The position numbers and the translations under genes were made by a program. Positions 6,723 to 21,500 of a stretch of 64,000 nt of DNA are shown in pieces. The notes beneath the pieces were generated by a model, which did not search any database, was not told the origin of the DNA, and saw only the letters and a program-made list of their open reading frames with translations. The DNA is taken from the sequence record LT960552.1. The stretch is one strand, 5' to 3'. Positions within the stretch are counted from its first letter, which is position 1. Every line of letters starts with the position of its first letter.

Positions 6723-7036
6723 TGAAAAAGTTTAATTATACAACTAAAAATATTTTAGTATCACCGATAATTGAATTAGTTGATCGTGCGATAGATTATG
6801 ATTATAATAATATCAGTTATTGGAATGAAGTTCGTGAAAGAATTGTCGATAATATACTAGAGGGTGTTTCATTAATTTGGGTGGAATATTTAACATTTGT
6901 ATTGACAATTGAAATATTAGATCCAGAATTAAATTATTCAGATAAACTTGATAAAGCTATTGACGATTTAGCTGGATACTGTTATGATTACGAATGTAAT
7001 ATTCGTATCGGTGGTGAAATAGTAAAGAGTGATTAA
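6722..7036 (+). CDS. hypothetical protein
   Basis: ORF track, coupled. Confidence 0.65.
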   Translation: MKKFNYTTKNILVSPIIELVDRAIDYDYNNISYWNEVRERIVDNILEGVSLIWVEYLTFVLTIEILDPELNYSDKLDKAIDDLAGYCYDYECNIRIGGEIVKSD

Positions 7037-7042
7037 AAATAC

Positions 7043-7156
7043 GCAGTGATCGTCTAGAGGCTTAGGACACGAAAAGCGATTCTTGATTAAGAATCTTACG
7101 GCATCCACAACTTTCATTCAACGAACGTAACGCAGGTTCGAATCCTGCTCACTGCA
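7043..7156 (+). ncRNA. CAGCA-module element 1: Glu-type tRNA body with anticodon arm replaced by module
   Basis: GCAGTGA/TCACTGC acceptor, D arm GTCTAGAGGCTTAGGAC, T arm GCAGG-TTCGAAT-CCTGC; insert GATTCTT..AAGAATC-TTACGGCAT. Confidence 0.8.
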
Positions 7157-7177
7157 CAAAAATTAAAAAGGTATTAT

Positions 7178-7552
7178 ATGAAACTTGAATATACTCCAGT
7201 ACCACATAAAATCGGTCCATTATTTGAAATTACGGTTGCACATGAACATGGTGATAGTGATAAATTAAACTACCATACATTGAAACTTGAAACTGCATCT
7301 GAAGATGAATTATTGACAGTACTAAAATATATAAATGAAACTTCAGACCAGATTAACGAAAAACGCTGGTATGATAAAAAACTTCCATTGAATTTTAGTT
7401 ATGACCATGATGTTCAATACGCTGAGGGTAAAACCTTGTATTTTGCATTACAACCAGATTCTATCTATAGTGAACCATATGCGGCGATTTCAATAAAAGA
7501 AGTTCGTTTTATTGATGCAAATGGTGTTGAATCAATAGTTCAAGGTTGGTAA
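7178..7552 (+). CDS. hypothetical protein, paralog of 9893..10498 (EHGD motif)
   Basis: HEHGDSD vs YEHGDAD N-terminal motif. Confidence 0.65.
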   Translation: MKLEYTPVPHKIGPLFEITVAHEHGDSDKLNYHTLKLETASEDELLTVLKYINETSDQINEKRWYDKKLPLNFSYDHDVQYAEGKTLYFALQPDSIYSEPYAAISIKEVRFIDANGVESIVQGW

Positions 7553-7553
7553 T

Positions 7554-7856
7554 ATGAAAAGTATTTTGATTTTTGAATATGCAGCAACTGGTGAAGGTTG
7601 TCGTACTGTAATTCGTTTTCATAATCAAAGCCGTATTACAGATGAAGCAGCGATTGAAACATTAAAAACAGAATTTGATCCGTATTTTCATGTAGGTTTT
7701 GAATTACATGATATCAGTACTGTAAAAGATAATGAATCAGTTATGCGAACTTTGAAAGAACATGTACCAATTTTATACAATTATGTTATGTTGCCGCCTG
7801 ATAGTTATCATCCGGTAATTCATGTAAAATATGAAGGTTATGTAAACTATTCATAA
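7554..7856 (+). CDS. hypothetical protein
   Basis: ORF track. Confidence 0.65.
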   Translation: MKSILIFEYAATGEGCRTVIRFHNQSRITDEAAIETLKTEFDPYFHVGFELHDISTVKDNESVMRTLKEHVPILYNYVMLPPDSYHPVIHVKYEGYVNYS

Positions 7857-7865
7857 AAGTAATTT

Positions 7866-7991
7866 GTGGGGTTAGCTCAGTTTGGTAGAGCAGCGAAAGA
7901 AACCAAAATGGAATCTTGAAAAGGATTCTAACAGCATTATATCTTCTACTGTAAATTCGCGGGTCGGTGTGTTCAAATCCACCACCCCACA
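7866..7991 (+). ncRNA. CAGCA-module element 2: tRNA interrupted by 51-nt module insert (GTA loop retained)
   Basis: GTGGGGT/ACCCCAC acceptor; GCGAA-[insert 7898-7948]-CTGTAAA-TTCGC; insert has GAATC..GATTC stem then TAACAGCAT. Confidence 0.85.
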
Positions 7992-8146
7992 CAAAATTGG
8001 TAAAAAAGCTCTGCGGTGGGACATTATATTCATCCACATGTTATTAGTTATTTTAAACAATCTGGTGAATATTTCAATGAATTGGATAAAACCGAACCAA
8101 GTAAATCAGATGTTAGTGGTGAACCAACAATAACTGGAAAATAAAA

Positions 8147-8509
8147 ATGAAAGTATATATTGATGACATTCGCGATCCAAAAAAGTACTTGACACCAGAA
8201 CAGGCCGATGGTATTGTATGGATTAAAGAAGCATGGAATGCACGTAACTTTTTAGTTGAACATGAATCCGTGATTGAAGTACTTCATCTTGATAATTACC
8301 TTGATGATGAATTCATTACCGGAACAGATATATTCTTTATGGTTGCAGGTGAAACCATATGGGGTGATCGGTCAGAATGGGCTAATCTTAAAACAATTTA
8401 TTTGCATTCATCAGATACTGATGTAATTGAAAAGTTGATGAAATATAAAGATGAGCTTCAAACAGCAGGGGTTGAATTAATTGACAACCACCAAGAAAGG
8501 AACTACTAA
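8147..8509 (+). CDS. cyclic-phosphate-processing receiver (cREC)-like domain protein
   Basis: KVYIDDIR..W..LHLDNYL..GTDI pattern of this receiver-fold family (recalled, not searched). Confidence 0.7.
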   Translation: MKVYIDDIRDPKKYLTPEQADGIVWIKEAWNARNFLVEHESVIEVLHLDNYLDDEFITGTDIFFMVAGETIWGDRSEWANLKTIYLHSSDTDVIEKLMKYKDELQTAGVELIDNHQERNY

Positions 8510-8869
8510 ATGAAAGTTTACGTAGATGATATTCGTAATCCAGCTAACCATCTCAGTACTGAACAGGCTGAAGGTATTATTTGGATTAAAGAGTGGTGGG
8601 AAGCACGTAACTTCATTTTGAAGAATGGATTAGATATTGAAGTATTGCACTTTGATAATTTTTTAGGTGATCCAAATCGTCGAACTGGTGGTGATATTCT
8701 AAGTTCAGTAATGTATCGTTTAAAACGTGGTAAATTTCCTAATTTGAAACAAATTTATTTACATAGTTCAGATAAAGAAGTAATTGATAAATTATATGAT
8801 TCATTTATTGAACATTGTAATGAATATGGAATTGAGTTAATAAAAAATTCACGTCCAAATCGTAGTTAA
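8510..8869 (+). CDS. cREC-like domain protein, tandem paralog
   Basis: KVYVDDIR..W..LHFDNFLG..GGDI; obvious paralog of upstream ORF. Confidence 0.7.
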   Translation: MKVYVDDIRNPANHLSTEQAEGIIWIKEWWEARNFILKNGLDIEVLHFDNFLGDPNRRTGGDILSSVMYRLKRGKFPNLKQIYLHSSDKEVIDKLYDSFIEHCNEYGIELIKNSRPNRS

Positions 8870-8875
8870 ACAAAT

Positions 8876-8996
8876 GGCGAGTTAGCTCAGTGGTAGAGCA
8901 CGTAGAAACCAAGGATTCTAGTACTAGATTCCCGCAGCAACAATAACTCATACTATGATAAAGTCGTGGTCGGGGGTTCAAATCCCTCACTCGCCG
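8876..8996 (+). ncRNA. CAGCA-module element 3: tRNA body with anticodon arm replaced by module
   Basis: GGCGAGT/ACTCGCC acceptor, canonical D and T arms; insert GGATTCTAG..CTAGATTCC-CGCAGCAA. Confidence 0.85.
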
Positions 8997-9061
8997 CAAA
9001 TAAATATCATTTTTCGAACCAACTGTGATAAATAAAAATAAATCATAGAGGGTTCGAAAAA

Positions 9062-9694
9062 ATGAAACAATGTTTAAATTGTAATAATGAAATTGATGAT
9101 AAGAAAAAGTTTTGCAATAGTTCGTGTGCTGCAAAGTACAATAATTCTCACAGGATATTATCGGAAGAAACAAAATCTAAAATTTCTAAATCTTTAAAAG
9201 GTCGAGAAGTTAAATTTATTGAAACTGAAAATGTTAAGTCTGGAAGACTTCGAGCGGGTGCTAAACGGAGAGAGGCAGCATTGGAACAATTGATGAAACG
9301 TGATTTTAATGATTTAAGTTTGGTAAGAAAAAAGAAACGTGTTAGAATAGAGCAAGAAAATAAATGTTTCAGGTGTGGATTGAATGAATGGATGAATGAA
9401 CCATTAATATTAGAAGTTGATCATATAGATGGTGATAATACTAATAATATAAGAGAAAATTTACGTGCATTATGTCCAAATTGTCACTCACAAACTGACA
9501 CATGGAGAGGTACGAATTCACGAAAAGTAAAAATTTCTGATGATGATTTAGTATCTATATTAAAAGAATCTAAATCCATACGAGATGCAATTTTAAAGGC
9601 TGGTATGTCAATTACCAGTCATAGTTATAAAAGAATAAACTTATTAATTGAGAAATATCATATTAATTTTTTACTAAGGGTAAAGGAGGTATAA
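9062..9694 (+). CDS. HNH homing endonuclease
   Basis: LEVDHIDGDNTNN..NLRALCPNCH; N-terminal CxxC/FCxxxC and NUMOD3-like HILSEETKSKIS. Confidence 0.9.
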   Translation: MKQCLNCNNEIDDKKKFCNSSCAAKYNNSHRILSEETKSKISKSLKGREVKFIETENVKSGRLRAGAKRREAALEQLMKRDFNDLSLVRKKKRVRIEQENKCFRCGLNEWMNEPLILEVDHIDGDNTNNIRENLRALCPNCHSQTDTWRGTNSRKVKISDDDLVSILKESKSIRDAILKAGMSITSHSYKRINLLIEKYHINFLLRVKEV

Positions 9695-9696
9695 TT

Positions 9697-9903
9697 ATGT
9701 TCCTTGATGAAATTAAACACGTTCCGTTTCCTAGTTATAAATCATTAGAAAAGGCACGTACTGAATCATCTAAATCAATTAATCCAACAACATATGATCG
9801 TTATAAAAAATATCATTATCCAGTAGGTACTGAATTTCGTTTAGCAAAAGCTATTGATTCTTTAATTGTTAAAATTAAAAAGGTAATTAAATATGTCAGT
9901 TAA
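9697..9903 (+). CDS. hypothetical protein
   Basis: GGAGG SD. Confidence 0.65.
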   Translation: MFLDEIKHVPFPSYKSLEKARTESSKSINPTTYDRYKKYHYPVGTEFRLAKAIDSLIVKIKKVIKYVS

Positions 9904-10498
9904 ATTTACTCCAGTAGTAACGTCGTTAACAAATACACTTGTTGTTGAATTAGAATACGAACATGGTGATGCAGATGCAACTACATATGACTATGCATCA
10001 ATCTCAGTACTTCCTGAACAGAAACAAACTATTGGGGGATTGCTTTCAATTATTGAGCATGGTTTAGAATGCCAGAATGCCGAACGATATGATGACACTA
10101 TTGATCCATTTTTTGTTGATGAAACAGTAACCTATGACAATGACCAAGGTATTCCATTAGTTGGAGTTGAAATTCGTTTTGGTTTTGATTATAATGCTCC
10201 GAAAGAGAAAGGAACTGTAATTGAAGTTGATAATGACCAGCAATATATTATTGTTCGTTCAGCAACGGGTGAAGTACACCAATTAGAATTTGATGAACTT
10301 GAAGATTGTATTACTTCATCGATTGGTATTATGGTAATGGATGGTAGTGAAATCAGCTTTACATATAATGGTATTAGTGTTAACATTGGTAGTGTTGGTG
10401 ATTGCACAGTTGACCAGCAATATAATGCATCAGGTGGTATTAACGCAGTTTATTACTATGATGAAAATGGTATTAAATACATTGTAACTGATTATTAA
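9893..10498 (+). CDS. hypothetical protein (EHGD motif)
   Basis: ORF track. Confidence 0.7.
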   Translation: MSVKFTPVVTSLTNTLVVELEYEHGDADATTYDYASISVLPEQKQTIGGLLSIIEHGLECQNAERYDDTIDPFFVDETVTYDNDQGIPLVGVEIRFGFDYNAPKEKGTVIEVDNDQQYIIVRSATGEVHQLEFDELEDCITSSIGIMVMDGSEISFTYNGISVNIGSVGDCTVDQQYNASGGINAVYYYDENGIKYIVTDY

Positions 10499-10704
10499 AA
10501 TTTGCGGGAACGCTTGACAAACTGCCAAACACCCCGTTAACATAGGGGGTTGTTTATGAAGTACTTTTATGAAGTATTAATTGTATTAGTAATTTTGGTT
10601 GGTCTTATTGCTTTCTGGTTAAAAAGTTTATTAATTTCAATACTAGGAATATTAATATTCTTAGTTGGATGTTTAATTGAATACGTTGTTAATAGGATAA
10701 AAAC

Positions 10705-11064
10705 ATGAAACATTTTCTTGAAGTATTATTTGTTGCTATTGCAGTAGTTGCTATGATGTTAGGTTATACAGTAATTTCAATTTGGTCAGCAATGTTTGCT
10801 ATTATCTTTTGGGCTGCTCCTAATTCATCAGTTAAAAAAACTCCCGAAGATTATCTTAATGAATCTCGTAAATTAAACGTATCAGGAGCAGAGGTTGAGT
10901 TTGAATTTTTATCGGATAAAGGTAAAACTTTTACAGTTAAATTAGAACCTCATTTGTATATTAATGATGATATGCTTATGGATAGTTTGGTAGAATATAT
11001 CGTTAAACACACTGGAATTCAAACCAGTTCTGAACGTTTAAATATCATTTCTATAAAAAAATAA
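10705..11064 (+). CDS. membrane-anchored hypothetical protein
   Basis: N-terminal hydrophobic segment. Confidence 0.65.
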   Translation: MKHFLEVLFVAIAVVAMMLGYTVISIWSAMFAIIFWAAPNSSVKKTPEDYLNESRKLNVSGAEVEFEFLSDKGKTFTVKLEPHLYINDDMLMDSLVEYIVKHTGIQTSSERLNIISIKK

Positions 11065-11070
11065 TTATTA

Positions 11071-11094
11071 AAAACCCTTTTTTAAGGGTTTTTT
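11071..11094 (+). terminator. intrinsic terminator
   Basis: AAAACCCTT-TTTT-AAGGGTTTT followed by T run. Confidence 0.6.
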
Positions 11095-11098
11095 AATT

Positions 11099-11184
11099 GG
11101 GGATATGGTGTAATGGTAGACGCAGGGGATTCAAAATCCCCCGCCCTTAGTGGCGTGTCAGTTCGAGTCTGACTATCCCCACCA
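11099..11184 (+). tRNA. tRNA-Leu(CAA)
   Basis: GGGGA-TTCAAAA-TCCCC, long variable arm, encoded CCA. Confidence 0.95.
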
Positions 11185-11304
11185 AATATTTTAATTAAAC
11201 TCATTTTTGTACTTGACATAAATCAAGAAATGTCTTACAATGTGTATATGTTCAGTAATGAACTAAACCGTTGTTAAACTATAAATTACCTTTTGGGTGA
11301 AAAA

Positions 11305-12918
11305 ATGAAAAAAACTTTATTAGCGTTATCTATTGTAGTAGCATCAATGACTGCATTTAACGCAACCGCAGCAGTCTCTTTAAAATCATCAGGCGACCAA
11401 TTTGGTCCGGCTATGTCTGATTTACTGAATTCAAATGAAAACGGTAACTGGAATCAGCAACGATTCATGAACACGTTCAATAATCGCTTTAATGGTACTG
11501 AAGCAGAAGCATTAGCATTGTTTAATGCTGTAAAAGGTGGTAATGTTCCAACATCACTTGATAGCTTTAATAGTACTTTACCATCTTCAGGTGGCACTGT
11601 CACTAAAGGTGATAAGGGCGACAAAGGTGACAAAGGCGAAAATGGTGCAGATGGTGCAGATGGTGCAGATGGTGCAGATGGTACAAAAGTATCATTAACT
11701 CCAGATGGTACTATTACATTGGATGATGGTAAAGGTGGAACCGTTCAACAAGATTTGGCTACACAAGCTGAATTAAATCAAGAACGTTATAAACTTGAAC
11801 AAAAAGATAAAGAACACGATGTTACTCTTACTGATCATGAAACTCGTTTAGATACAGTCGAAAATATGACGAATGGTTTAAATGTCGTTGTAGGGACTAA
11901 TAAACAAGATATCGAAGAATTAAAAGACGGTAAAGCAGACAAAAAAGATCTGGATAAAGAAGTTGCAGATCGTGATGCTGGTGATAAAGTACTAGATTCT
12001 AAAATTGATAATGTAGTATCAAATCAATCAAGTACTGATGCTGCACAAAATGCCGCCATTGATAGTAAAGTAGATAAAACTACACAAGCAGCGAAAGATT
12101 CAGCTCAAGATACTGCTATTGGTAATAAAGTTGACAAAAGTCAATATAATACTGATAAAGTAATTCAGGGTATTCATGATGCTGCACAAGACAATGCAAT
12201 TATCGGACTGGCAGTAACAAAAGCAGACAAAAAAGATCTGGATAAAGAAGTAGCTGACCGTAAAACCGCAGATAATAAATTGCAATCAAATATTGACAAT
12301 GAAGCAAATGTGCGTAATAATGCAGATGTTGCATTGAAAAACAATATTGATAAAAATAAAGCTGACCAACTTGGTGTTGATACTGCACAAAATGCCGTTA
12401 TTGATACTAAAGCAAGTAAGCAAGATTTAAACACTGAAGTTGATGAACGTAAAGTAGCTGATAAAAAGTTGCAGAAAAACATTGACAATGAAGCAAATGT
12501 ACGTAATAATGCAGACCAAGTTCTTAGTTCTCGCATTGATACAAATAGTACTACTTTAGTACAACACGACCAACGTATTACAAGTAACACACAACGTGTT
12601 GGTGTAGTTGAAAATCGTGTAACTAATTTAGAACAAAGTACTAATCGTCGGTTTACAGAATTAAAAAGTACTGTAGATGATAACCGTAAAGTTGCAAGTG
12701 CTGGTATTGCTGGTGCAGGTGCAATGGCAAATATTCCACAAGTATCGCAAAATAGTACTTTCTCTGTCGGTGCTGGTATTGGTGGTTATGATAGTGAGCA
12801 AGCAGTTGCTGTAGGATTCTCTGCTCGTATTAACAACAACATTGTAACTAAGGTTGCTGTAAGTACAAATACACAATCCGAGTTGTTATGGGGTGCTGGT
12901 GTAGGCGTAGAATGGTAA
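11305..12918 (+). CDS. YadA-like trimeric autotransporter adhesin with collagen-like repeat
   Basis: Signal peptide, (GDK)3/(GAD)4 Gly-X-Y repeat, coiled-coil stalk repeats, C-terminal anchor AGIAGAGAMANIPQ..GAGVGVEW. Confidence 0.9.
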   Translation: MKKTLLALSIVVASMTAFNATAAVSLKSSGDQFGPAMSDLLNSNENGNWNQQRFMNTFNNRFNGTEAEALALFNAVKGGNVPTSLDSFNSTLPSSGGTVTKGDKGDKGDKGENGADGADGADGADGTKVSLTPDGTITLDDGKGGTVQQDLATQAELNQERYKLEQKDKEHDVTLTDHETRLDTVENMTNGLNVVVGTNKQDIEELKDGKADKKDLDKEVADRDAGDKVLDSKIDNVVSNQSSTDAAQNAAIDSKVDKTTQAAKDSAQDTAIGNKVDKSQYNTDKVIQGIHDAAQDNAIIGLAVTKADKKDLDKEVADRKTADNKLQSNIDNEANVRNNADVALKNNIDKNKADQLGVDTAQNAVIDTKASKQDLNTEVDERKVADKKLQKNIDNEANVRNNADQVLSSRIDTNSTTLVQHDQRITSNTQRVGVVENRVTNLEQSTNRRFTELKSTVDDNRKVASAGIAGAGAMANIPQVSQNSTFSVGAGIGGYDSEQAVAVGFSARINNNIVTKVAVSTNTQSELLWGAGVGVEW

Positions 12919-12983
12919 TTGGTTGAATACGTTAGGGGTACACTGTACCCCTAAAATTTTAAGTTAGATAGCAGGAGAATTCA

Positions 12984-13493
12984 ATGTATACAGAAGAATA
13001 TTGTGAAAACAATTTGATAAACATTGGAAAAGGTGCTTCCCGAACAGTTTTTGCAATAAATCTTGATTATGTAGTTAAAGTTGCACATAATAAATTTGGT
13101 ATAGACCAAAATATTCAAGAGATAAAATTGTTTCAAAAATATGGAAAGATATTACCTCTTTGTAAAATAGATCTTTACCATAGTAATGAAAACTATATAA
13201 TAATGGAACGTATTAATACTTTTAATGTAGAGTATAATGCATTTGATATCACCCAAATAGATATGATATCACATTTGGTTTGTGTTGAACAAATTGATAA
13301 TGATTATATTAGCACATTACCTCCAGTACTGGCAGAATTTGCAAATAATTTACTCAGTAATGAATTAAGTAATGACGAAATTAGAAATGTATTGTATGAT
13401 GTTGTACATTATAATGTTGGTATAAAAGATGGTAAGATATTAATTCTTGATTATGGATTTACTGAAGAATTAGATTCTGAATATTGGGAATAA
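12984..13493 (+). CDS. minimal protein-kinase-like protein
   Basis: IGKGASRTVF Gly loop, VVKV lysine, DVVHYN catalytic loop, LDYG. Confidence 0.7.
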   Translation: MYTEEYCENNLINIGKGASRTVFAINLDYVVKVAHNKFGIDQNIQEIKLFQKYGKILPLCKIDLYHSNENYIIMERINTFNVEYNAFDITQIDMISHLVCVEQIDNDYISTLPPVLAEFANNLLSNELSNDEIRNVLYDVVHYNVGIKDGKILILDYGFTEELDSEYWE

Positions 13494-13615
13494 AAAATAG
13501 CTTGACATGATGATTTGAATTTGATATAATGTATATCACATCGACGGATGATAAACGTAACTCTGGTACTTATGATTAAGTACTTTTTTGAAAATAAAAT
13601 ATAAGGGCTTTATAA

Positions 13616-13840
13616 ATGGCTAAGAACACAATTACTGATATTGGCGAAGTTGAACGTACTGTGAATTATATCAAGTTCCAGATCTCTCAAGCTGACGAGC
13701 AGCTTGCACCATTCGCTAACAGCGATAAGCCAAAGATTTGCTATGCACATCTGTTGGAGTGGAAAAAGCAGTTGCAATCTGAACTGTATGAAATCCGTCA
13801 GGCTCAGCAGAAAGCACGTCATAACAATCCACACAAGTAA
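13616..13840 (+). CDS. hypothetical protein
   Basis: ORF downstream of TTGACA-N17-TATAAT (13502-13530). Confidence 0.7.
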   Translation: MAKNTITDIGEVERTVNYIKFQISQADEQLAPFANSDKPKICYAHLLEWKKQLQSELYEIRQAQQKARHNNPHK

Positions 13841-13900
13841 TAAGCCATGCCGCCAGCATTGTTGGCGGCGTCTTTTAAGTGATAACAAGAGTATATTATA

Positions 13901-14143
13901 ATGAAAAGTGCAACAGCGTTAAAAAATATGAATCAGCGTATTCAAACATTACGTTCTCAACTGGATTTAGCTTGGTCAGATTGGAGTAAGTTAAATAGTA
14001 TTGAGACTAAAACCAAAGATGAATCAAAAGATCTATCTAAAATTTCAGGTTTTATTAGTAAATTAAATTATGAAATTCGCGGTTTGGAATTGTCTTTTAA
14101 TGAATTGAAAAAACAAGTCATTGATGAAATCATTTTGTCTTAA
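13901..14143 (+). CDS. coiled-coil hypothetical protein
   Basis: ORF track. Confidence 0.6.
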   Translation: MKSATALKNMNQRIQTLRSQLDLAWSDWSKLNSIETKTKDESKDLSKISGFISKLNYEIRGLELSFNELKKQVIDEIILS

Positions 14144-14149
14144 TAAAAA

Positions 14150-14620
14150 ATGGGGTTAGTTATGGGTGTGATAGTTATTTACTGTATATTAGGTTCCCTT
14201 GGTTTATTCACATTGTATATGTTTGTAGTAACATCTGCAATGGGGACAGAACGACTTAAAACTTCTCAGTACTTTATGTCTTCATTGAGTTATTGTGAAG
14301 AAGCAACAACTAAAATTAATTTGTTGATTGATAAGTATGAAGCAGGGCTTATTAAAGCAAAATTAAAAAATAATGTAATTGAATTTACTGAAATGGAAAA
14401 AAATATTCCAGCAGGTGAAATCTGGATAGCAAATAAATATTTTTCATATGGTCAGTTACATCGTTATGGTGCGAATGGAAATATCTCTTGGCAATGTAAT
14501 AAACCAAGTTTAAAAACTTTTAAACGAATTATTAAACTTGAAAAACAGCTAAACGTTGCTCATCAAGAACCAGTACCGAAAAGTGCAAAATCAACAGATG
14601 AGCCTGTAATTTTGGACTAA
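14150..14620 (+). CDS. membrane-anchored hypothetical protein
   Basis: N-terminal TM segment. Confidence 0.65.
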   Translation: MGLVMGVIVIYCILGSLGLFTLYMFVVTSAMGTERLKTSQYFMSSLSYCEEATTKINLLIDKYEAGLIKAKLKNNVIEFTEMEKNIPAGEIWIANKYFSYGQLHRYGANGNISWQCNKPSLKTFKRIIKLEKQLNVAHQEPVPKSAKSTDEPVILD

Positions 14621-14724
14621 GGGCGTAATTGCCCTATTTTAATTAAGAGATTTAAAATATACATTTGAGAACTTCATGGTATGGGAAAAGTAGTGAATTT
14701 CTTTCAAATGTTATCGTAAATATT

Positions 14725-14753
14725 TGAAACAACTAAAAAAATTGTGGTATAAT
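14725..14753 (+). promoter_or_regulatory. TGAAAC-N17-TATAAT promoter upstream of module element 4
   Basis: TGAAAC 14725-14730, TATAAT 14748-14753. Confidence 0.8.
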
Positions 14754-14760
14754 ATAGTAC

Positions 14761-14886
14761 ATAAGGCAACGGAATCTTACAGCAAAAATACTAATTTTGA
14801 TGAAAACGAAACGACGAGGTTCGAATCCTCACCCACGAATTGCCTTATTATTAGTGGGAGCATGGTGCTGGATAAACAAAGATTCC
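14761..14886 (+). ncRNA. CAGCA-module element 4: minimal permuted tRNA-like cargo
   Basis: GGAATCT-TACAGCAA ... GAGG-TTCGAAT-CCTC, CCCAC/GTGGG closed acceptor, short D-like hairpin ... AGATTCC. Confidence 0.8.
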
Positions 14887-14907
14887 AAAATTTAAGTTAG
14901 AAAAATA

Positions 14908-14936
14908 TGAAACAAATCAAAAATTTGTGGTATAAT
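14908..14936 (+). promoter_or_regulatory. TGAAAC-N17-TATAAT promoter
   Basis: TGAAAC 14908-14913, TATAAT 14931-14936. Confidence 0.8.
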
Positions 14937-14945
14937 ATAAGAAGT

Positions 14946-15056
14946 AAAGCGGGATGGTGATTGATGAAAGCTGTTATTTGATTCTAGACAATCATAATAA
15001 GCGAGTAATAGAACAGGGTTCTTAATATCACATGGGTTCAAATCCCTGTCGCTGCA
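14946..15056 (+). pseudogene. degenerate class II (Ser-like) tRNA-like RNA with elongated anticodon arm
   Basis: T-loop TTCAAAT, weak acceptor AGCG/CGCT, long stem TTATTTGATT/AATCATAATAA with 6-nt loop CTAGAC. Confidence 0.5.
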
Positions 15057-15057
15057 C

Positions 15058-15188
15058 AAAAGCAACAAATGAAATCTTACAGCAAACACAACATTTTTTC
15101 CTTGCATAGAAAAACGGTGGGGTTCGATTCCCCAACATCCAAGTTGCTTTTTAGGATGTGTCTGGACGACCGTATGACACAGATTTCA
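15058..15188 (+). ncRNA. CAGCA-module element 5: minimal permuted tRNA-like cargo with TGC loop hairpin
   Basis: TGAAATCT-TACAGCAA ... TGGGG-TTCGATT-CCCCA, ACATCC/GGATGT closed acceptor ... AGATTTCA. Confidence 0.8.
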
Positions 15189-15193
15189 GTACT

Positions 15194-15268
15194 GTTCCGT
15201 TAGACAAATTGGTATAGTCACCACACTTTCAATGTGGATTTCTGAGGGTTCAAGTCCCTCACGGAACG
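15194..15268 (+). tRNA. tRNA-Glu(TTC)
   Basis: CCACA-CTTTCAA-TGTGG; GTTCCGT/ACGGAAC. Confidence 0.93.
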
Positions 15269-15272
15269 CTAA

Positions 15273-15387
15273 AGGATTCGTACAGCAACAATAAACTCTT
15301 AAAATTCAATTGGTGAAAACAACCTTGCAGTTCGATTCTGCTTCCACAATGCGTGGATCTGGTGGTGGATAGAAAAAACCGAATCCT
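15273..15387 (+). ncRNA. CAGCA-module element 6: minimal permuted tRNA-like cargo
   Basis: AGGATTCG-TACAGCAA ... GCAG-TTCGATT-CTGC, TCCAC/GTGGA ... CGAATCCT. Confidence 0.8.
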
Positions 15388-15416
15388 GATTTTAATTAAG
15401 AAGTACTAAAGAATTT

Positions 15417-15578
15417 GATACACACGGATTTATACAGCAAACATAATCCTAAAATAAAACATACGATAATGTTATTAACTCGGAATTCGTTCCTTTCGTT
15501 AGTACTTGGCAACTTGGGTACTTAAATAAGTTGTATCACCTCATGTGTATCGGATTAGTGGTGATTATAAATAAATCC
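15417..15578 (+). ncRNA. CAGCA-module element 7: multi-hairpin cargo
   Basis: GGATTTAT-ACAGCAA ... ATAAATCC; internal hairpins CAACTT/AAGTTG and ATCACC/GGTGAT. Confidence 0.7.
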
Positions 15579-15614
15579 AGTAAATCAAAAGTACCTTTAT
15601 CGGTACTTTTTTAT

Positions 15615-15707
15615 GGAAGATTGGCAGAGTTTGGTTTATTGCACAGGTCTTGAGTACCTGCGGGGGTTAATAGCCCTCCGTGAGTTCGAATCTCACATCT
15701 TCCTCCA
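15615..15707 (+). tRNA. tRNA-Ser(TGA), loop CTTGAGT
   Basis: CAGGT-CTTGAGT-ACCTG, long variable arm, encoded CCA. Confidence 0.9.
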
Positions 15708-15726
15708 AATTTTATGTAGTACAATG

Positions 15727-15800
15727 GGGTACGTAGCTCAGTCTGGTAGAGCAGCCATGCGAAAACGGTGTGTCGGTGGTTCGAATCCACTCGCTCCCCA
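15727..15800 (+). pseudogene. degenerate tRNA (Phe-like, loop GCGAAAA, poorly paired anticodon stem)
   Basis: Canonical D and T arms; mismatched acceptor and anticodon stems. Confidence 0.55.
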
Positions 15801-15804
15801 CTAA

Positions 15805-15861
15805 GGAATCTAGCAGCAACCATAACCCAATCAAACTTTTAATTTGACAATTATGGATTCC
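15805..15861 (+). ncRNA. CAGCA-module element 8: isolated Lys(TTT) anticodon stem-loop cargo
   Basis: GGAATC-TAGCAGCAA-CCATAA..TCAAA-CTTTTAA-TTTGA..TTATGG-ATTCC. Confidence 0.85.
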
Positions 15862-15884
15862 AGTTATTTTAAGTTGAGAATAGC

Positions 15885-16289
15885 ATGACGGATAACGAAA
15901 AACTTGAAAATATATTAATTGAAGCATTGACAATAATTAATACTTCAACATATAATTTTGAATCGTCCAAAGACGATTCAAAATCTAGATTTGTCTTATG
16001 CGGTAAAAGAGCACAACTTAAGTTGTACTTTTCTGCCAAATATGGTGAATTAAGTATAGAATTTATTCATCACTTGATTGGAGATACCCTATCATTTCAG
16101 ATTAATTATTATGATGATTCGGACGAAGATGATGATTACCATAATTTATATGGTGAAATACGTATTCCAAGAACTGAAGAACAATACTTTCAGTACTACA
16201 CAATTCAAGATCATGTTTTCTCTTTAGAGTTTTATAAATTATTAGAAAACATAATGAACGAATTATTGGTAAAGTGGCAGAGCGGCTGA
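15885..16289 (+). CDS. hypothetical protein, EEQHFQ-motif family
   Basis: TEEQYFQ motif; 3' end overlaps tRNA-Ser. Confidence 0.7.
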   Translation: MTDNEKLENILIEALTIINTSTYNFESSKDDSKSRFVLCGKRAQLKLYFSAKYGELSIEFIHHLIGDTLSFQINYYDDSDEDDDYHNLYGEIRIPRTEEQYFQYYTIQDHVFSLEFYKLLENIMNELLVKWQSG

Positions 16290-16358
16290 ATGCAACCGCT
16301 TGGAAAGCGGTCAGGTTAGGTGATACTAGCCTCGTAGGTTCAAATCCTATCTTTACCG
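16268..16358 (+). tRNA. tRNA-Ser(GGA)
   Basis: ACCGC-TTGGAAA-GCGGT, long variable arm, G73. Confidence 0.93.
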
Positions 16359-16408
16359 CAAAAGTAATAACCTCCTTATTAAAGAATACATACCCATAGG
16401 AGAATATT

Positions 16409-16765
16409 ATGTACGAGAAAGATGATGGTCCATTAACAGATGAACAATTGTGTATTATTCGTGAAATGAATAGTCATTTAGAACAATCTAATTTAAGTAT
16501 AGACTTGGATTGGTTAAATAGTGAAAAACAAGGAAATGCAATGTATTACGACTACTATTACAAAATTGATGGTGAACTTCGTCGTCATACCAGTAATCAA
16601 GAGTTAACTGATGCGGAAATCAATAATATTTTTGGTGCAAGCAAACATGTGGTAATGCTTACTCCAATTGTTTTTGAACGTGAGATTAGTACGGAAGATA
16701 AGTCTGGTAATAAAATTAAAAGTACTGAAAAAGTACACGTAGGATTTTTAGGTTACGTGGAATAA
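16409..16765 (+). CDS. hypothetical protein
   Basis: GGGAG SD. Confidence 0.65.
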   Translation: MYEKDDGPLTDEQLCIIREMNSHLEQSNLSIDLDWLNSEKQGNAMYYDYYYKIDGELRRHTSNQELTDAEINNIFGASKHVVMLTPIVFEREISTEDKSGNKIKSTEKVHVGFLGYVE

Positions 16766-16810
16766 TATAATTTATTGGATTCGAAAGAATCCTTTTTAAG
16801 TGAGATGATT

Positions 16811-17035
16811 ATGGATAATCAACATAAAAAGATTAAAGGGTATCGTGACCTTTCTCAAAAAGAAATCGATGCAATGAATGAAATTAAACAACTAGCAGCT
16901 ACTGTTGAAGAGTTAATTGAAAAACTTGAAGGAACTGACTCTATTGATAAACGCTGGCTTGCTATTGCAAAAACAGATTTACAAAAAGGGTTCATGTCAG
17001 CAGTGCGAAGCGTGGCTAAACCAGATTCCTTTTGA
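16811..17035 (+). CDS. acb2: anti-CBASS cyclic-oligonucleotide sponge Acb2
   Basis: [17 protein letters not shown]-terminus and [23 protein letters not shown]-terminus match the Acb2 family. Confidence 0.9.
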
Positions 17036-17043
17036 GGAAAATA

Positions 17044-17424
17044 ATGCATACAATTGATAACCATGCTGATATAATTGATGATGTTATAACTGAAATACTT
17101 GAAATTTATACGTGTAAAGTTGAAGTTTATAATTATGGTAATTTGTTTTCACAGCACGGCTATAGTACTAAACATAATATAAATTATCATATAAATGCAA
17201 AGTACTATAATAATAATTCAAAAAATGGTAGACGAGCTAATAGTCTTGTGATAGAATTTAAATTCACTAACAGAGTTCCTAAAGGACTAAAAGATTATTA
17301 TAGATTATCAATACCTGAAATACAAAGTATTACAGAAGAACGACATTTTCAATTAATGTTAGTTACTGATGATATGTACTTGGATTATGAAGTTATAAAT
17401 AAATTACGTACACATATTATGTAA
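17044..17424 (+). CDS. hypothetical protein, EEQHFQ-motif family
   Basis: TEERHFQL motif. Confidence 0.7.
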   Translation: MHTIDNHADIIDDVITEILEIYTCKVEVYNYGNLFSQHGYSTKHNINYHINAKYYNNNSKNGRRANSLVIEFKFTNRVPKGLKDYYRLSIPEIQSITEERHFQLMLVTDDMYLDYEVINKLRTHIM

Positions 17425-17433
17425 AAAAGTTTT

Positions 17434-17487
17434 TAGAATCTAACAGCAATCAAAACTCATTGGATATATGAAAAAAAATAGATTCTA
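17434..17487 (+). ncRNA. CAGCA-module element 9: small hairpin cargo with GAT-centred 7-nt loop
   Basis: TAGAATCTA-ACAGCAA..TCAT-TGGATAT-ATGA..TAGATTCTA; 5 nt upstream of tRNA-Ile(GAT). Confidence 0.75.
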
Positions 17488-17492
17488 GTATT

Positions 17493-17564
17493 TGGGAATT
17501 ATCTCAGCGGTAGAGAGCACAACTGATAATTGTGAGGTCACTGGTTCAAATCCAGTATTCCCAA
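17493..17564 (+). tRNA. tRNA-Ile(GAT)
   Basis: CACAA-CTGATAA-TTGTG; TGGGAAT/ATTCCCA. Confidence 0.92.
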
Positions 17565-17663
17565 CTAAGTAGTTCAGTACTGAAATATGTACAGTGAAAT
17601 TATTCAACACTATAGGTAGAACTTTGAATGAATCAGTAAGCCTATAAGTAACTATATTAAATT

Positions 17664-17794
17664 TGGAATTCAACAGCAATCTTCACTTACTAAAAACAGC
17701 TACCTCACGGTTTGTAGGTTCGAGTCCTACCTTGTACTTTCGAGTACATGTGGTGAAATCGGTAAACACGGCTGTCCAAAAGAAATGAATTCCA
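17664..17794 (+). ncRNA. CAGCA-module element 10: circularly permuted Leu-type tRNA
   Basis: TGGAATTCA-ACAGCAA, 3' half (ACAGC, variable arm, GTAGG-TTCGAGT-CCTAC, TGTACT), TTCG, 5' half (AGTACA, TGGTGAAATCGGTAAACAC, GCTGT), TGAATTCCA. Confidence 0.9.
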
Positions 17795-17847
17795 GTATTA
17801 ATTAAGACATAAATATTCTTATACATTATTTTTGTAGGAATATAGAT

Positions 17848-18447
17848 ATGGAAATGAAAAAGTTGATGGAAGAGATATCTTCCATAATGGAAGGACAATT
17901 ACCAGGATATTATTATCACGGTAGCTCTAGACCAATATCAAATTTCAGTGATGAGTTTGTGGGTAGAGGTAATGATGAATATGGTCCAGGTATATATTTT
18001 AGTTCTGCACCAAATACTTCAATAGGTTATGCAAAAGATGGTGGTTCTAATGGAATGGTATATCAATGCGAACTGAATTTAAGAAAAGAACTATCTAAAA
18101 AAACTAAAATTAATAAAGCAGTACTATTTAAATTAATACAAAATACACCTGATGAAGATGCTTATACTAACTGGAATGAAAATAAAAATGTTGCTTATAG
18201 AACAGCATTACAGGGTTACATCGATGAAGGAAATATGTACGATGCATTAATGGGTGTTTGGTACGATTGGTATCGGGAGTATCCTGTTCAATTCGTAAGA
18301 TCATTAGTACAATTAGGATATGACGGATACATATATACTTTTGGAAGCGGTGAACGTTTTATAATAGTATATAATCCAGCAAGTATTAAAGTTATAAACA
18401 CTTTCAATCCAGAAGAAGCTAAGCAGAAACTACTTGGAAGTGATTAA
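17848..18447 (+). CDS. ADP-ribosyltransferase-like protein
   Basis: YYHGS and YGPGIYFSS motifs typical of H-Y-type ART folds; inference. Confidence 0.6.
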   Translation: MEMKKLMEEISSIMEGQLPGYYYHGSSRPISNFSDEFVGRGNDEYGPGIYFSSAPNTSIGYAKDGGSNGMVYQCELNLRKELSKKTKINKAVLFKLIQNTPDEDAYTNWNENKNVAYRTALQGYIDEGNMYDALMGVWYDWYREYPVQFVRSLVQLGYDGYIYTFGSGERFIIVYNPASIKVINTFNPEEAKQKLLGSD

Positions 18448-18453
18448 AAAATT

Positions 18454-18573
18454 TGGAATTCAACAGCAAATCATTCAAAACACGTAGCATGTCGTAGGTT
18501 CAAGTCCTACCAGTACTTAATTGTACTGTAGCTCAGTCGGGAGAGCAGCCACCTTAAAAAGAAATGAATTCCA
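18454..18573 (+). ncRNA. CAGCA-module element 11: circularly permuted Val-type tRNA
   Basis: TGGAATTCA-ACAGCAA, 3' half (ACAC-GTAGC, GTAGG-TTCAAGT-CCTAC, CAGTAC), TTAATT, 5' half (GTACTG, TAGCTCAGTCGGGAGAGC, GCCAC-CTT), TGAATTCCA. Confidence 0.9.
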
Positions 18574-18730
18574 GTATTAATTACAAAGAGAACCAATAAT
18601 GTACACTAATATTTTTGATATATTAAAAGATTTAACAGTGTTTGGAAAAGTAACATATCCAGTAAAATAAAATAATTAGGTTATTTCGAAGTTCTAAAAC
18701 AACGAAACATTTACTAACGTAAAAAGAATT

Positions 18731-18789
18731 TGGAATCTATCAGCAACCATAACCCAATCAAACATTTAATTTGACAATTATGGATTCCA
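18731..18789 (+). ncRNA. CAGCA-module element 12: Lys-type anticodon stem-loop cargo with variant loop CATTTAA
   Basis: Near-identical copy of element 8; loop differs at position 33. Confidence 0.85.
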
Positions 18790-18811
18790 GCCTATTTTTT
18801 GGAGTACAAAA

Positions 18812-19078
18812 ATGTATTATGCTCGGTTAGAACATCCTGATAATGGATATGAAATTGAAAGAATACATCTTAAAACCTTAGATTGTGAAAAGTACTATCC
18901 AGTATATTCAATTAATATTGGAAGTTGGAGTACCAGTGTATATCTTAGAGATGATGAGTATGAATATAATAGTGTAAACTTTGAGTTCTACATCAAAAAT
19001 GGAGATGAATATATTCTCGAAGATATTTTCTCAGACCCTGATTTAAATCCGTACTTGATAGAAGACGATGAAGAATAA
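18812..19078 (+). CDS. hypothetical protein
   Basis: GGAG SD. Confidence 0.65.
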   Translation: MYYARLEHPDNGYEIERIHLKTLDCEKYYPVYSINIGSWSTSVYLRDDEYEYNSVNFEFYIKNGDEYILEDIFSDPDLNPYLIEDDEE

Positions 19079-19092
19079 ATATCACAAATAAA

Positions 19093-19121
19093 TGAAACGA
19101 TTAAAAAATTTGTGGTATAAT
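19093..19121 (+). promoter_or_regulatory. TGAAAC-N17-TATAAT promoter upstream of tRNA-Asn
   Basis: TGAAAC 19093-19098, TATAAT 19116-19121. Confidence 0.8.
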
Positions 19122-19144
19122 ATAAGTAAGAAAAACAACAAGAT

Positions 19145-19217
19145 GGTTACGTAGCTCAGTGGTTAGAGCGTTCGCCTGTTAAGCGAGTGGTCGCTGGTTC
19201 AAATCCAGCCGTGATCG
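19145..19217 (+). tRNA. tRNA-Asn(GTT)
   Basis: TTCGC-CTGTTAA-GCGAG, G73. Confidence 0.93.
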
Positions 19218-19265
19218 CAAATTGATGTTTGGTATGGTTTAAAAATATAATAACCAAACATTATA

Positions 19266-19308
19266 AAGAATCTTTCAGCATTAACACGGTGAAAATATAT
19301 AGATTCTT
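19266..19308 (+). ncRNA. CAGCA-module element 13: minimal module
   Basis: AAGAATCT-TTCAGCAT..GTGAAAA..AGATTCTT. Confidence 0.65.
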
Positions 19309-19312
19309 GATT

Positions 19313-19389
19313 AGGAGATTAGCATAGATGGCCTAATGCACCGGTCTTTGAAATCGGTATCGGTGGTTCGAATCCACCATCTCCTGCCA
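19313..19389 (+). tRNA. tRNA-Gln(TTG)
   Basis: CCGGT-CTTTGAA-ATCGG; AGGAGAT/ATCTCCT-G-CCA. Confidence 0.92.
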
Positions 19390-19408
19390 ATTTAAGTAGA
19401 ATAATAGT

Positions 19409-19831
19409 ATGAAGTTATGTAAGAGATGTAATCAGAATAAGCCATTAGAAGCTTTTTCAAAAAATAAATCCAAAAAAGACGGATTACAAGTGAGTTGTAA
19501 GGAATGTTTTAAAACAATAAACAACAATTCATATAAAAATGAATCTGGTGAACGTCGAAGAAAAGTTGGCGAGACTCGTGATAGAATTAAAGCTATTAAT
19601 AGATCGATTATATCAGAACATCGATCAGTAAATCCATGTCACTTTTGTGGAGAAACCGAACATTGTTGTTTAGACTTTCATCACTTAGACCCTACTGTCA
19701 AAGATAAAGAAATATCTGTGTTGGTACATTATAGTACTGCTAGATTGGTAAAGGAAATAGCTAAATGTATAGTTATTTGCTCAAATTGTCACCGGAAACA
19801 CCATGCTGGTATTGAAGGTTACGAATTATAA
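19409..19831 (+). CDS. HNH endonuclease
   Basis: CKRC..CKEC N-terminus; CHFC..LDFHHLDP..KCIVICSNCHRKHH. Confidence 0.85.
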   Translation: MKLCKRCNQNKPLEAFSKNKSKKDGLQVSCKECFKTINNNSYKNESGERRRKVGETRDRIKAINRSIISEHRSVNPCHFCGETEHCCLDFHHLDPTVKDKEISVLVHYSTARLVKEIAKCIVICSNCHRKHHAGIEGYEL

Positions 19832-19839
19832 AGTTTTCA

Positions 19840-19966
19840 TTTCCTTGGTGAAAACAAGCTGGCATGATTCCCCCTGCTTGTAAAATTATCGAACGGGAAC
19901 CGCGTAGCACCGGTACAGGTCAGATTGTAAAGATCAAGTATGTACAGTACTGAGAGCGGCAGTACA
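19840..19966 (+). ncRNA. structured intergenic region, candidate ncRNA
   Basis: CTTG-GTGAAAA-CAAG, TTCCC/GGGAA, GTACTG/CAGTAC hairpins. Confidence 0.4.
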
Positions 19967-19972
19967 AAAAAT

Positions 19973-20054
19973 GCGGGATTAGCTCAGTGGTAGAGCACTT
20001 GCCTTCCAAGCAAGAGGCGAATAGGTTCCATCGGTTCGAATCCGATATTCCGCT
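19973..20054 (+). tRNA. tRNA-Gly(TCC) with enlarged variable region
   Basis: CTTGC-CTTCCAA-GCAAG, U73, 15-nt variable region. Confidence 0.85.
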
Positions 20055-20173
20055 CAAATTAAACAAACAATAAGGTAAATCCTATGATGCTATAGAAAAA
20101 CAGTACTGGTCCTCCTGATAACTTTAATTCAGAACAAAACACTAAATTAAATATTATCCAAAAGGAACATACT

Positions 20174-20500
20174 ATGTTAAACAAAGAAAAATATATTACT
20201 GTAAAAAATACTTGGAAATTAGAAAAAGAGCATAACATTTTCGACCATGTGGTTTATAATGTTATTCGTGGCCTACCATCAGATAATGGGTTTGCACCAA
20301 TTACTGATAAAGGAAAACTTCAAGCAAATAATAACGACCCGTATAATATGTACAACTATGCAGTTCTTGAATTGCATTATGAGTTGAATGAAAAACGATA
20401 CAATTATGAAAAAACAGTACAACATTATTCTAAACTATTTGGCATTGAATTTACACCTGAACTTATCGAAGTAGTACTTACTTTGATTAAAGTTAAATAA
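20174..20500 (+). CDS. hypothetical protein
   Basis: AAGGA SD. Confidence 0.7.
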   Translation: MLNKEKYITVKNTWKLEKEHNIFDHVVYNVIRGLPSDNGFAPITDKGKLQANNNDPYNMYNYAVLELHYELNEKRYNYEKTVQHYSKLFGIEFTPELIEVVLTLIKVK

Positions 20501-20508
20501 CAGAATTA

Positions 20509-20572
20509 AAGAATCCAACAGCACCCATAAATGAAATCAACTGTTAATTGAAAAATTCAAAAATGGATTCTT
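20509..20572 (+). ncRNA. CAGCA-module element 14: isolated Asn(GTT) anticodon stem-loop cargo
   Basis: AAGAATCC-AACAGCAC..TGAA..TCAA-CTGTTAA-TTGA..TTCA..GGATTCTT. Confidence 0.85.
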
Positions 20573-20646
20573 GTTTTTATTTGGAAGTCTCATGAAAGAT
20601 AATTTTTATGAAGATTTAAGATTTAGATATATTGAAGTACATGAAT

Positions 20647-20676
20647 TTGACGTTATAGCACTGAACGTGCTATAAT
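20647..20676 (+). promoter_or_regulatory. sigma70-like promoter with internal 9-bp inverted repeat
   Basis: TTGACG-N17-TATAAT; TTATAGCAC-N5-GTGCTATAA. Confidence 0.7.
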
Positions 20677-20680
20677 AGCT

Positions 20681-20754
20681 GGAGCCGTAGTTCAGTTGGT
20701 TAGAACGCTTGCCTGTCACGCAAGAGGCCGTGGGTTCAAGTCCCATCGGTTCCG
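20681..20754 (+). tRNA. tRNA-Asp(GTC)
   Basis: CTTGC-CTGTCAC-GCAAG, G73. Confidence 0.95.
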
Positions 20755-20771
20755 CAAAAATAAGGAAAATT

Positions 20772-21035: not shown

Positions 21036-21038
21036 ATT

Positions 21039-21390: not shown

Positions 21391-21407
21391 CAAATAAAAT
21401 AAAACAT

Positions 21408-21480: not shown

Positions 21481-21500
21481 CAAAATTAAGGTAATTAAAG

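Follow-up and report, generated by a model that had tools for sequence, protein, structure and literature searches.

The last 64 kb of the genome of Yersinia jumbo phage fHe-Yen9-03 (LT960552.1, 352.6 kb, Eneladusvirus), hereafter the window (64,000 nt, with window position 7000 corresponding to record position 295596), contain a long tRNA-rich tract with 23 tRNAs called by ARAGORN and 27 tRNA matches in Rfam, and among these tRNAs lie 14 elements, E1 to E14, that share one small RNA module (Table 1). A preliminary description, made by reading the letters of the window alone, had listed these elements, and all 14 were recovered with the same starts on the plus strand. The pattern RRAWTYNNNCRGCA, which captures the module, had 15 matches against 1.02 expected, and none of 100 shuffles reached 15. 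The 15th match, at position 12807, is on the minus strand inside a 541-amino-acid open reading frame (ORF) and lacks a partner strand, and it looks like a chance occurrence. This ORF (11293-12918), in the middle of the tRNA region, encodes an adhesin-like protein with a YadA-like membrane anchor domain. The existing annotation of LT960552.1 covers E1-E3 only, as pseudo or undetermined tRNAs.

The starts of the elements are the outer ends of a closing helix, P1, of 7-10 bp, which begins 9-10 nt before a core reading CGGCA in E1 and CAGCA in the other copies of the window, followed by a sixth base that is U in E2 and E13, C in E14, and A in the remaining 11. The strand facing the core is rich in A. 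CAGCA had been described as following a six-base stem word after exactly 2 nt; the distance is 3 nt, of which 0-2 nt stay unpaired when the helix is taken at its full 8-10 bp. P1 is closed by a distant 3′ strand in eleven copies. E1-E3 are, as the preliminary description had recognized, the circular permutation of the rest, with P1 forming a hairpin with a four-base cap that replaces the anticodon loop in a tRNA body of normal topology.

The cargo of the module falls into four classes. E1-E3 (class A) have normal tRNA topology, and E4, E5, E6, E10, and E11 (class B) are permuted and tRNA-like, running from the module through a T arm, a closed acceptor-like stem, a D arm, and an A-rich tract to the 3′ strand of P1 (P1b; the 5′ strand is P1a). 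E7 carries 137 nt of other structured cargo, and E8, E9, and E12-E14 are short (41-62 nt). A T arm is present in eight copies and a plausible anticodon-arm hairpin in E5 only. The preliminary description of the cargo was correct in part. Of the bare anticodon stem-loops that it had listed, look-alikes were found in E8, in E14, and nearly in E12, but not in E9 and E13, the cargo of which shows no anticodon-loop likeness. The inner hairpin loop of E8 equals the anticodon loop of the phage's own tRNA-Lys(UUU), and that of E14 equals the anticodon loop of its tRNA-Asn.

The module is conserved well beyond this genome. Syntenic sets of 12-13 copies each are present in Serratia phage BF, Erwinia phage pEa_SNUABM_49, Pectobacterium phage CBB, and Cronobacter phage GAP32, and module copies also occur in Salmonella phage Munch. 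A scan of IMG/VR located the module in numerous contigs ~355-371 kb long as well as in unrelated lineages, in which the sequence of P1 differs and the core is unchanged. In 44 open copies from 13 lineages, core positions 0 to 5 were C in 44, A in 43, G in 44, C in 44, A in 43, and A in 42 copies, respectively. In the same set, the base preceding the core was A in 38 copies, the helix began at position -10 in 41, a G followed P1b in 35, and the eight bases 5′ of P1b consisted of 59% A compared with a background of 36%. The few bases immediately preceding P1a in E4 and E5 show complementarity to the loop closing the acceptor-like stem (14764-14768 with 14838-14842, and 15059-15064 with 15162-15167, respectively), and this complementarity is kept in phages BF, CBB, and GAP32, without covariation.

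The covariation of P1 suggested in the preliminary description was borne out both within the jumbo-phage group and across unrelated phages. When 28 short copies from the jumbo group were compared, pairing was seen in 96% of the P1 cells and double changes in five of the nine pairs, a result matched by none of 500 shuffles. Several rows of a MAFFT alignment of all lineages (A3) were one column out of register; therefore, no model was built from it, and alignments A4 and A5, fitted to model R1, which was trained on jumbo-phage copies only, were used instead. In A4 (49 R1-aligned matches), double changes occur in all nine P1 pairs, and in 40 matches from unrelated environmental phages 92% of the cells pair, with double changes in eight of nine pairs, compared with 34-48% in slid controls.

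In other phages, the module adjoins a gene for a DUF2828 protein. On a gut-phage contig, modules lie just 3′ of a gene encoding a 593-amino-acid DUF2828+DUF7788 protein, on the same strand. Eight more lineages, namely Citrobacter phage Michonne, Listeria phage LP-064, Campylobacter phage CP30A, Vibrio phage BUCT194, Enterococcus phage Porthos, Bacillus phage Izhevsk, Cronobacter phage S13, and Sinorhizobium phage phiM12, have one to five modules with lineage-specific P1 helices in intergenic DNA by the DUF2828 gene and on its strand. Two annotated 'long tRNAs' of phage S13 (5878-5998 and 6008-6120 of the locus) belong to class A and have their CCA encoded in the DNA, and 'tRNA-OTHER' and oversized tRNA annotations in phages CBB, GAP32, and BF are elements of the same kind.

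In a blind test, 80 IMG/VR loci were fetched by the protein alone, the gene was set to the plus strand, and both strands were scanned by a simple rule, with the helix start relaxed to -10 or -9 since a strict -10 rule misses several window copies that start at -9. The counts come from 72 of the 80 loci, with jumbo relatives left out. Within 500 nt of the gene, its strand carried 79 copies and the opposite strand 0 (binomial p = 3e-24), and 49 of the 72 loci had at least one adjacent copy. Modules reached a density of 1.13 per kb near the gene, compared with 0.115 per kb at greater distances on its strand and 0.047 per kb on the opposite one, and model R1 placed 39 of its 40 matches in these loci on the gene's strand. 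Since 38 of the loci have no tRNA gene within 5 kb and a copy nevertheless lies within 500 nt of the DUF2828 gene in 21 of them, the module is tied to the DUF2828 gene and not to tRNA clusters. No module was found in Klebsiella phage KNP2, which has 19 tRNAs and lacks a DUF2828 gene. Furthermore, a scan of 185,579 bacterial and archaeal genomes of the GTDB for one common P1 variant gave a single match, which looks like chance.

Phage fHe-Yen9-03 itself encodes a protein of this family, g179 (DUF2828+DUF7788; PF11443+PF25043), at 102192-103718 of LT960552.1, ~190 kb upstream of the window. The fold of g179 was deduced from an AlphaFold2 model of a 92%-identical relative (predicted local distance difference test score 89.5, predicted template modelling score 0.88). 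With this model, the only Foldseek matches in the Protein Data Bank (PDB) below E 1e-3 were four Ro60 structures, all matched over the full length (E 1.8e-8 to 6e-6), namely those of Thermus phage phiLo (9KOP, the best match), Xenopus Ro (1YVR), Deinococcus Rsr (2NVO), and human Ro60 (9NEN); the next matches were isolated von Willebrand factor A domains. A sequence search of the PDB with the DUF2828 protein gave no match, and the relation to Ro60 is thus visible by fold comparison only. The preliminary description had noted no Ro60 gene, because g179 lies outside the window, and a system without Ro60 is not supported.

The DUF2828 family occurs in 455-711 GenBank phage records, including fHe-Yen9-03 and every one of its relatives and spanning Felix O1-like, Listeria P100-like, T4-like, and jumbo phages; at least 5,760 proteins of the protein collection are related to it, and RefSeq names its members 'RNA-binding protein'. 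In fHe-Yen9-03, g179 lies between the RNA ligase gene g177 and the 2H phosphoesterase gene g182 (LT960552.1 100485-104613), in what looks like an RNA-repair cluster, and in Listeria phage LP-064 the DUF2828 gene is followed by genes for RtcB and other RNA-end enzymes. These RNA-repair neighbours resemble those of bacterial rsr-yrlA-rtcB loci (PMC4201824).

Considering these results, we propose that the 14 elements are, in all probability, Y-RNA-like partners of the phage's own Ro60-like ring protein g179, with the module as the docking site. This proposal follows from the fit of the elements to the working definition of bacterial and phage Y RNAs, which comprises a terminal helix with a motif, a same-strand Ro60-type neighbour, and often a tRNA-like domain (PMC4201824; PMC12135203). 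In the case of fHe-Yen9-03, a Ro60-type gene is present in the genome, and the elements have a covarying terminal helix with a conserved motif at a fixed distance. A tRNA-like domain of the YrlA type, in which the helix strands enclose a T arm, a D arm, and a closed acceptor-like stem, was found in E4, E5, E6, E10, and E11, but not in E7 or the five short copies, and E1-E3 have the opposite topology. The preliminary description had taken the module for a shared protein-binding or processing handle; it behaves like a handle on which a protein docks, and the topology of the permuted tRNA-like copies is that of YrlA. Because a Ro60-like gene is encoded in the genome and the module adjoins such genes elsewhere, the module would be a new docking motif within the Ro60/Y-RNA kind and not the categorically new system that had been considered.

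Comparison with the Rfam YrlA family (RF02553), which the preliminary description had called for, gave significant matches to the tRNA-like domain, but all were below the gathering score of 69. The best match among relatives was 47.8 bits, in Enterococcus phage Porthos. Several observations weigh against the proposal. The best YrlA match in the window, in E11, reached 36.2 bits and covered model positions 24-84 only, and neither P1 nor the core is matched in the YrlA alignment. The YrlA motif GNCGAA(N)G near the 5′ end (PMC4201824) is absent, the core being CAGCAA, with each of its bases kept in 42-44 of the 44 copies, and this core departs from CGAA/GNCGAA, the motif of canonical Y RNAs. The folding energies of single sequences are modest (z -0.8 to -3.2). 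Alignments A4 and A5 were fitted to R1, which favours pairing; we regard the pairing signal in these alignments as real because of the slid controls and because the helix sequences differ by eye. The rule-based detector is crude, with a background of ~0.05 matches per kb, and KNP2 is the sole negative-control genome. Finally, ~190 kb separate the RNAs from the protein gene in fHe-Yen9-03 and its jumbo relatives, and same-strand adjacency is seen only in other lineages.

Searches of Rfam 15 with window positions 6500-21500, up to E 10, gave only tRNA and weak YrlA matches, and five related loci gave nothing more; a ribozyme or other Rfam family was rejected, there being no Rfam 15 match to the module. 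E1 and E3 passed the gathering score of the tRNA family (RF00005) through their acceptor, D, and T arms only, with 45-60 nt inserted, and ARAGORN called none of the 14 elements a tRNA, a cloverleaf with an anticodon arm and a 7-nt loop being absent. ARAGORN likewise found no transfer-messenger RNA (tmRNA), and the acceptor stems of E1-E3 lack G3:U70. A tmRNA-like tag ORF starting from the GCA of the core was rejected, since orthologs show frameshifts in its peptides and nothing sets the frame-0 length apart. Intrinsic terminators were also rejected, P1 being long-range and AT-rich and the U-run not always lying 3′.

Among described systems, YrlA and other bacterial Y RNAs (RF02553; PMC4201824) are like the module RNAs in having a helix of the 5′ and 3′ ends beside a conserved motif, a permuted tRNA-like domain with T and D arms and a closed acceptor-like stem, and, in most lineages, a place by a Ro60-type gene on its strand in an RNA-repair neighbourhood. 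They differ in that the phage core is CAGCAA, 10 nt from the start of the helix, instead of GNCGAA; in that the phage protein belongs to the DUF2828+DUF7788 branch and not to Pfam TROVE; and in that fHe-Yen9-03 has 14 copies far from the gene, with cargo that is not always tRNA-like. The Ro60 of Thermus phage phiLo binds two RNAs encoded beside its gene, both of which have a terminal stem adjoining a conserved motif (PMC12135203). These RNAs, Yrl1 and Yrl2 (PMC12135203; PDB 9KOP, 9L5Y), are likewise short partners encoded beside a phage Ro60 homolog gene, with a 5′-3′ stem flanking a bulge that holds the conserved motif; unlike the module RNAs, they carry CGAA and are two in number, and tRNA-like or permuted versions are unreported. 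As judged by the description in the paper only, Salmonella YrlB (PMC4201824) resembles E8, E9, and E12-E14 in being a short partner RNA consisting of the docking region only, but differs from them in motif and sequence.

Gp130 of Bas63 (Felixounavirus) is a Ro60-like protein with tRNA genes downstream of its own gene and is reported to counter the Ppl defence; the authors of that preprint guessed that some of the neighbouring 'tRNA genes' might be Y RNAs, and the RNAs were not identified (bioRxiv 10.1101/2024.10.10.617714). The locus is of the same type as that of Citrobacter phage Michonne gp140, where four modules lie just 3′ of gp140. Our literature search found no paper describing these module RNAs and none on DUF2828 in phages. 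Two-piece (circularly permuted) tmRNA and permuted tRNA genes are known cases in which one RNA body occurs in normal and permuted gene order. Unlike these, the phage elements lack a conserved tag frame and G3:U70, and mostly lack an anticodon arm. The proposed docking motif CAGCAA is new, and the phage elements further differ from described Y RNAs in their normal-topology and cargo-free versions, in the protein branch, and, in jumbo phages, in copy number and distance from the gene.

The preliminary description had suggested decoys or repair substrates. One alternative, which we hold improbable, is that the elements are free-standing decoys of tRNAs or anticodon loops for host anticodon nucleases or tRNA-modifying enzymes, with the module serving only to stabilize them. 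The identity of the E8 and E14 loops with those of tRNA-Lys(UUU) and tRNA-Asn would suit such decoys, as would the T arm of eight copies and the RNA-repair genes of the phage. However, the T-loop motif is missing from most long copies in other lineages (4/31 have it), E7, E9, and E13 have no tRNA-like part, and it is the module that is invariant and the cargo that varies. A decoy role is also compatible with docking on Ro60 and may be a sub-function of it.

About as improbable is a processing or stability clamp of tRNA-operon transcripts, in which a host RNase or RNA chaperone would read the module with no tie to Ro60. All window copies do lie among tRNA genes, often abutting them (E6, E8, E9, and E13), and a G and then U-rich sequence commonly follow P1b. 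Evidence against such a clamp comes from the tRNA-free DUF2828 loci, 21 of 38 of which have a copy by the gene, and from the 19-tRNA cluster of KNP2, which has no module; furthermore, P1 is AT-rich and long-range, unlike intrinsic terminators, and its common variant had only the one chance-looking match in the GTDB genomes.

It is very improbable that the elements are intron-containing or permuted tRNA genes from which the module is excised and the ends joined, comparable to the bulge-helix-bulge junctions of archaea and some algae. Such splicing is suggested by the presence of the same module inside the tRNA-shaped E1-E3 and at the termini of permuted bodies, by the Tyr-like loop beside the outer stem of E2, and by the RNA ligases encoded. 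However, working tRNAs are unlikely to arise in this way because most permuted copies have no anticodon arm and because stable tetraloops cap the acceptor stems of E10 and E11, in relatives too; in addition, a tRNA body is missing from the short copies, any putative splice site would lie at a varying distance from the module, and no splicing endonuclease was seen. Least credible of all, and barely so, is a repeat acting at the level of DNA, for instance a nuclease site or a miniature inverted-repeat element that has spread across the tRNA region, which the P1a/P1b inverted repeats around variable cargo and the nearby HNH endonuclease genes might suggest, but which conflicts with the strict strand bias (14/14 on the tRNA strand, and 79 versus 0 by the gene), the compensatory helix changes including G-U pairs, the asymmetric single-stranded core, and the closed-hairpin versions in tRNA-like bodies.

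Returning to Y-RNA-like partners of g179, we propose the following scenario. The elements would be expressed as discrete RNAs, and their module, comprising helix P1, a linker of 0-3 nt, single-stranded CAGCAA, and the A-rich opposite strand, would dock on g179 by physical binding. The variable cargo, which may be a tRNA-like domain in normal or permuted form, a small hairpin with an anticodon-like loop, or another fold, would serve as an adaptor or gate, a role familiar from described Ro60/Y-RNA particles. During infection, it may tether the ring to tRNA- or RNA-handling enzymes, for RNA repair, RNA quality control, or counter-defence.

The promoter-like 14-mer TTGTGGTATAATAT has six matches in the window against 0.2 expected (199, 1616, 14742, 14925, 19110, and 31285), always just upstream of a tRNA or tRNA-like gene, E4 and five others, and occurs once ~170 nt upstream of g179 (2822 in locus numbering), a shared site that hints weakly at co-expression of the RNAs and g179. 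The 3′ side of the site at 14925 holds an unannotated, degenerate tRNA-like stretch (14941-15048) without CAGCA, which has no Rfam tRNA match and only a 9.4-bit match to a tmRNA 3′ end at 15034-15046. Two tandem cREC_REC (cyclic-phosphate-processing receiver) paralogs lie between E2 and E3, and such a pair also precedes the E3 ortholog in GAP32 and CBB. Based on the role of cREC discussed in PMC7824862, these genes are read as RNA-repair context, and they may belong to the system. An ART-PolyVal ADP-ribosyltransferase gene (17848-18447), between the paralogs E10 and E11, is partly lost in the sister phage fHe-Yen9-04 and has a homolog in Xanthomonas phage XaC1; it was rejected as the partner protein on account of this partial loss and because the XaC1 homolog does not lie in a tRNA region. 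Elsewhere in the window, tRNAs were noted at 1645-1720, 15727-15799, and 30972-31043; one of these has the anticodon CTA (suppressor-like; labelled Pyl by ARAGORN), and the other two were found by Rfam but not by ARAGORN. On the minus strand at 57239-62988 are five tandem ORFs of 366-388 amino acids, apparently paralogs.

Table 1. Module elements and protein genes discussed in the text (window coordinates unless locus numbering is indicated)
Feature	Position	Strand	Class and cargo	Parts of the module	Scores, position, and annotation
E1	7043-7156	+	Class A; acceptor, D, and T arms; module in place of anticodon loop	P1 hairpin 7078-7084/7089-7095; loop 7085-7088; core CGGCA 7099-7103	Rfam tRNA 38.6 bits; deposited as tRNA-Pseudo
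E2	7866-7991	+	Class A; tRNA-shaped body; insert enclosed by outer stem GCGAA/UUCGC; Tyr-like loop beside outer stem	P1 hairpin 7910-7917/7922-7929; cap GAAA 7918-7921; core CAGCA 7932-7936	Deposited as tRNA-Pseudo
E3	8876-8996	+	Class A; tRNA-shaped body	P1 hairpin 8913-8920/8925-8932 (one mismatch); loop 8921-8924; core CAGCA 8935-8939	Rfam tRNA 48.3 bits
E4	14771-14886	+	Class B, permuted tRNA-like; T arm, acceptor-like hairpin, D-like arm, A-rich tract	P1a 14771-14778; core 14780-14784; P1b 14879-14886	Promoter-like site 14742-14755 just upstream
E5	15070-15188	+	Class B; anticodon-arm-like hairpin, T arm, closed acceptor stem	P1a 15070-15077; core 15080-15084; P1b 15181-15188	
E6	15273-15387	+	Class B; T arm	P1a 15273-15280; core 15283-15287; P1b 15380-15387	Immediately 3′ of tRNA-Glu
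E7	15426-15578	+	137 nt structured cargo without T arm	P1a 15426-15433; core 15435-15439; P1b 15571-15578	
E8	15805-15861	+	Short; inner hairpin loop CUUUUAA	P1a 15805-15812; core 15814-15818; P1b 15854-15861	R1 49.6 bits
E9	17434-17487	+	Short	P1a 17434-17442; core 17444-17448; P1b 17479-17487	R1 72.8 bits; immediately 5′ of tRNA-Ile
E10	17664-17794	+	Class B; T arm, acceptor hairpin with UUCG cap	P1a 17664-17672; core 17674-17678; P1b 17786-17794	
E11	18454-18573	+	Class B; canonical T and D arms, closed acceptor hairpin	P1a 18454-18462; core 18464-18468; P1b 18565-18573	Rfam YrlA 36.2 bits (18487-18549); R1 31.6 bits
E12	18731-18789	+	Short; E8 paralog	P1a 18731-18740; core 18741-18745; P1b 18780-18789	R1 53.9 bits
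E13	19266-19308	+	Shortest	P1a 19266-19273; core 19276-19280; P1b 19301-19308	R1 41.8 bits; immediately 5′ of tRNA-Gln
E14	20509-20572	+	Short; inner hairpin loop CUGUUAA	P1a 20509-20517; core 20519-20523; P1b 20564-20572	R1 63.5 bits
cREC_REC, first	8147-8509	+			Pfam PF20274, E 2.9e-8
cREC_REC, second	8510-8869	+			Pfam PF20274, E 7.6e-10
g177	1288-2541 (locus)				Locus numbering 1288-5416 = LT960552.1 100485-104613
g179	2995-4521 (locus)				
g182	4994-5416 (locus)				

Ro60-like DUF2828 proteins are very common in phages, and their RNA partners had previously only been guessed. The RNA family, with its three topologies, its modular cargo, and a proposed docking motif that is well defined, is now easily searchable, many phage annotations such as 'pseudo-tRNA' and 'tRNA-OTHER' are explained by module RNAs, and the cargo and role of phage Ro60 particles can be addressed directly by sequencing and structural work. 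A more far-reaching possibility, which we consider unlikely, is that one Ro60-like ring serves as a chassis for 14 interchangeable adaptor RNAs, each with its own tRNA mimic aimed at its own host enzyme or defence nuclease. Among these adaptors would be RNAs shaped like tRNAs, complete with real acceptor ends, as well as hairpins copying the anticodon loops of tRNA-Lys and tRNA-Asn. If this were true, the phage would possess a programmable, RNA-specified platform for counter-defence or repair instead of a single Y-RNA particle.

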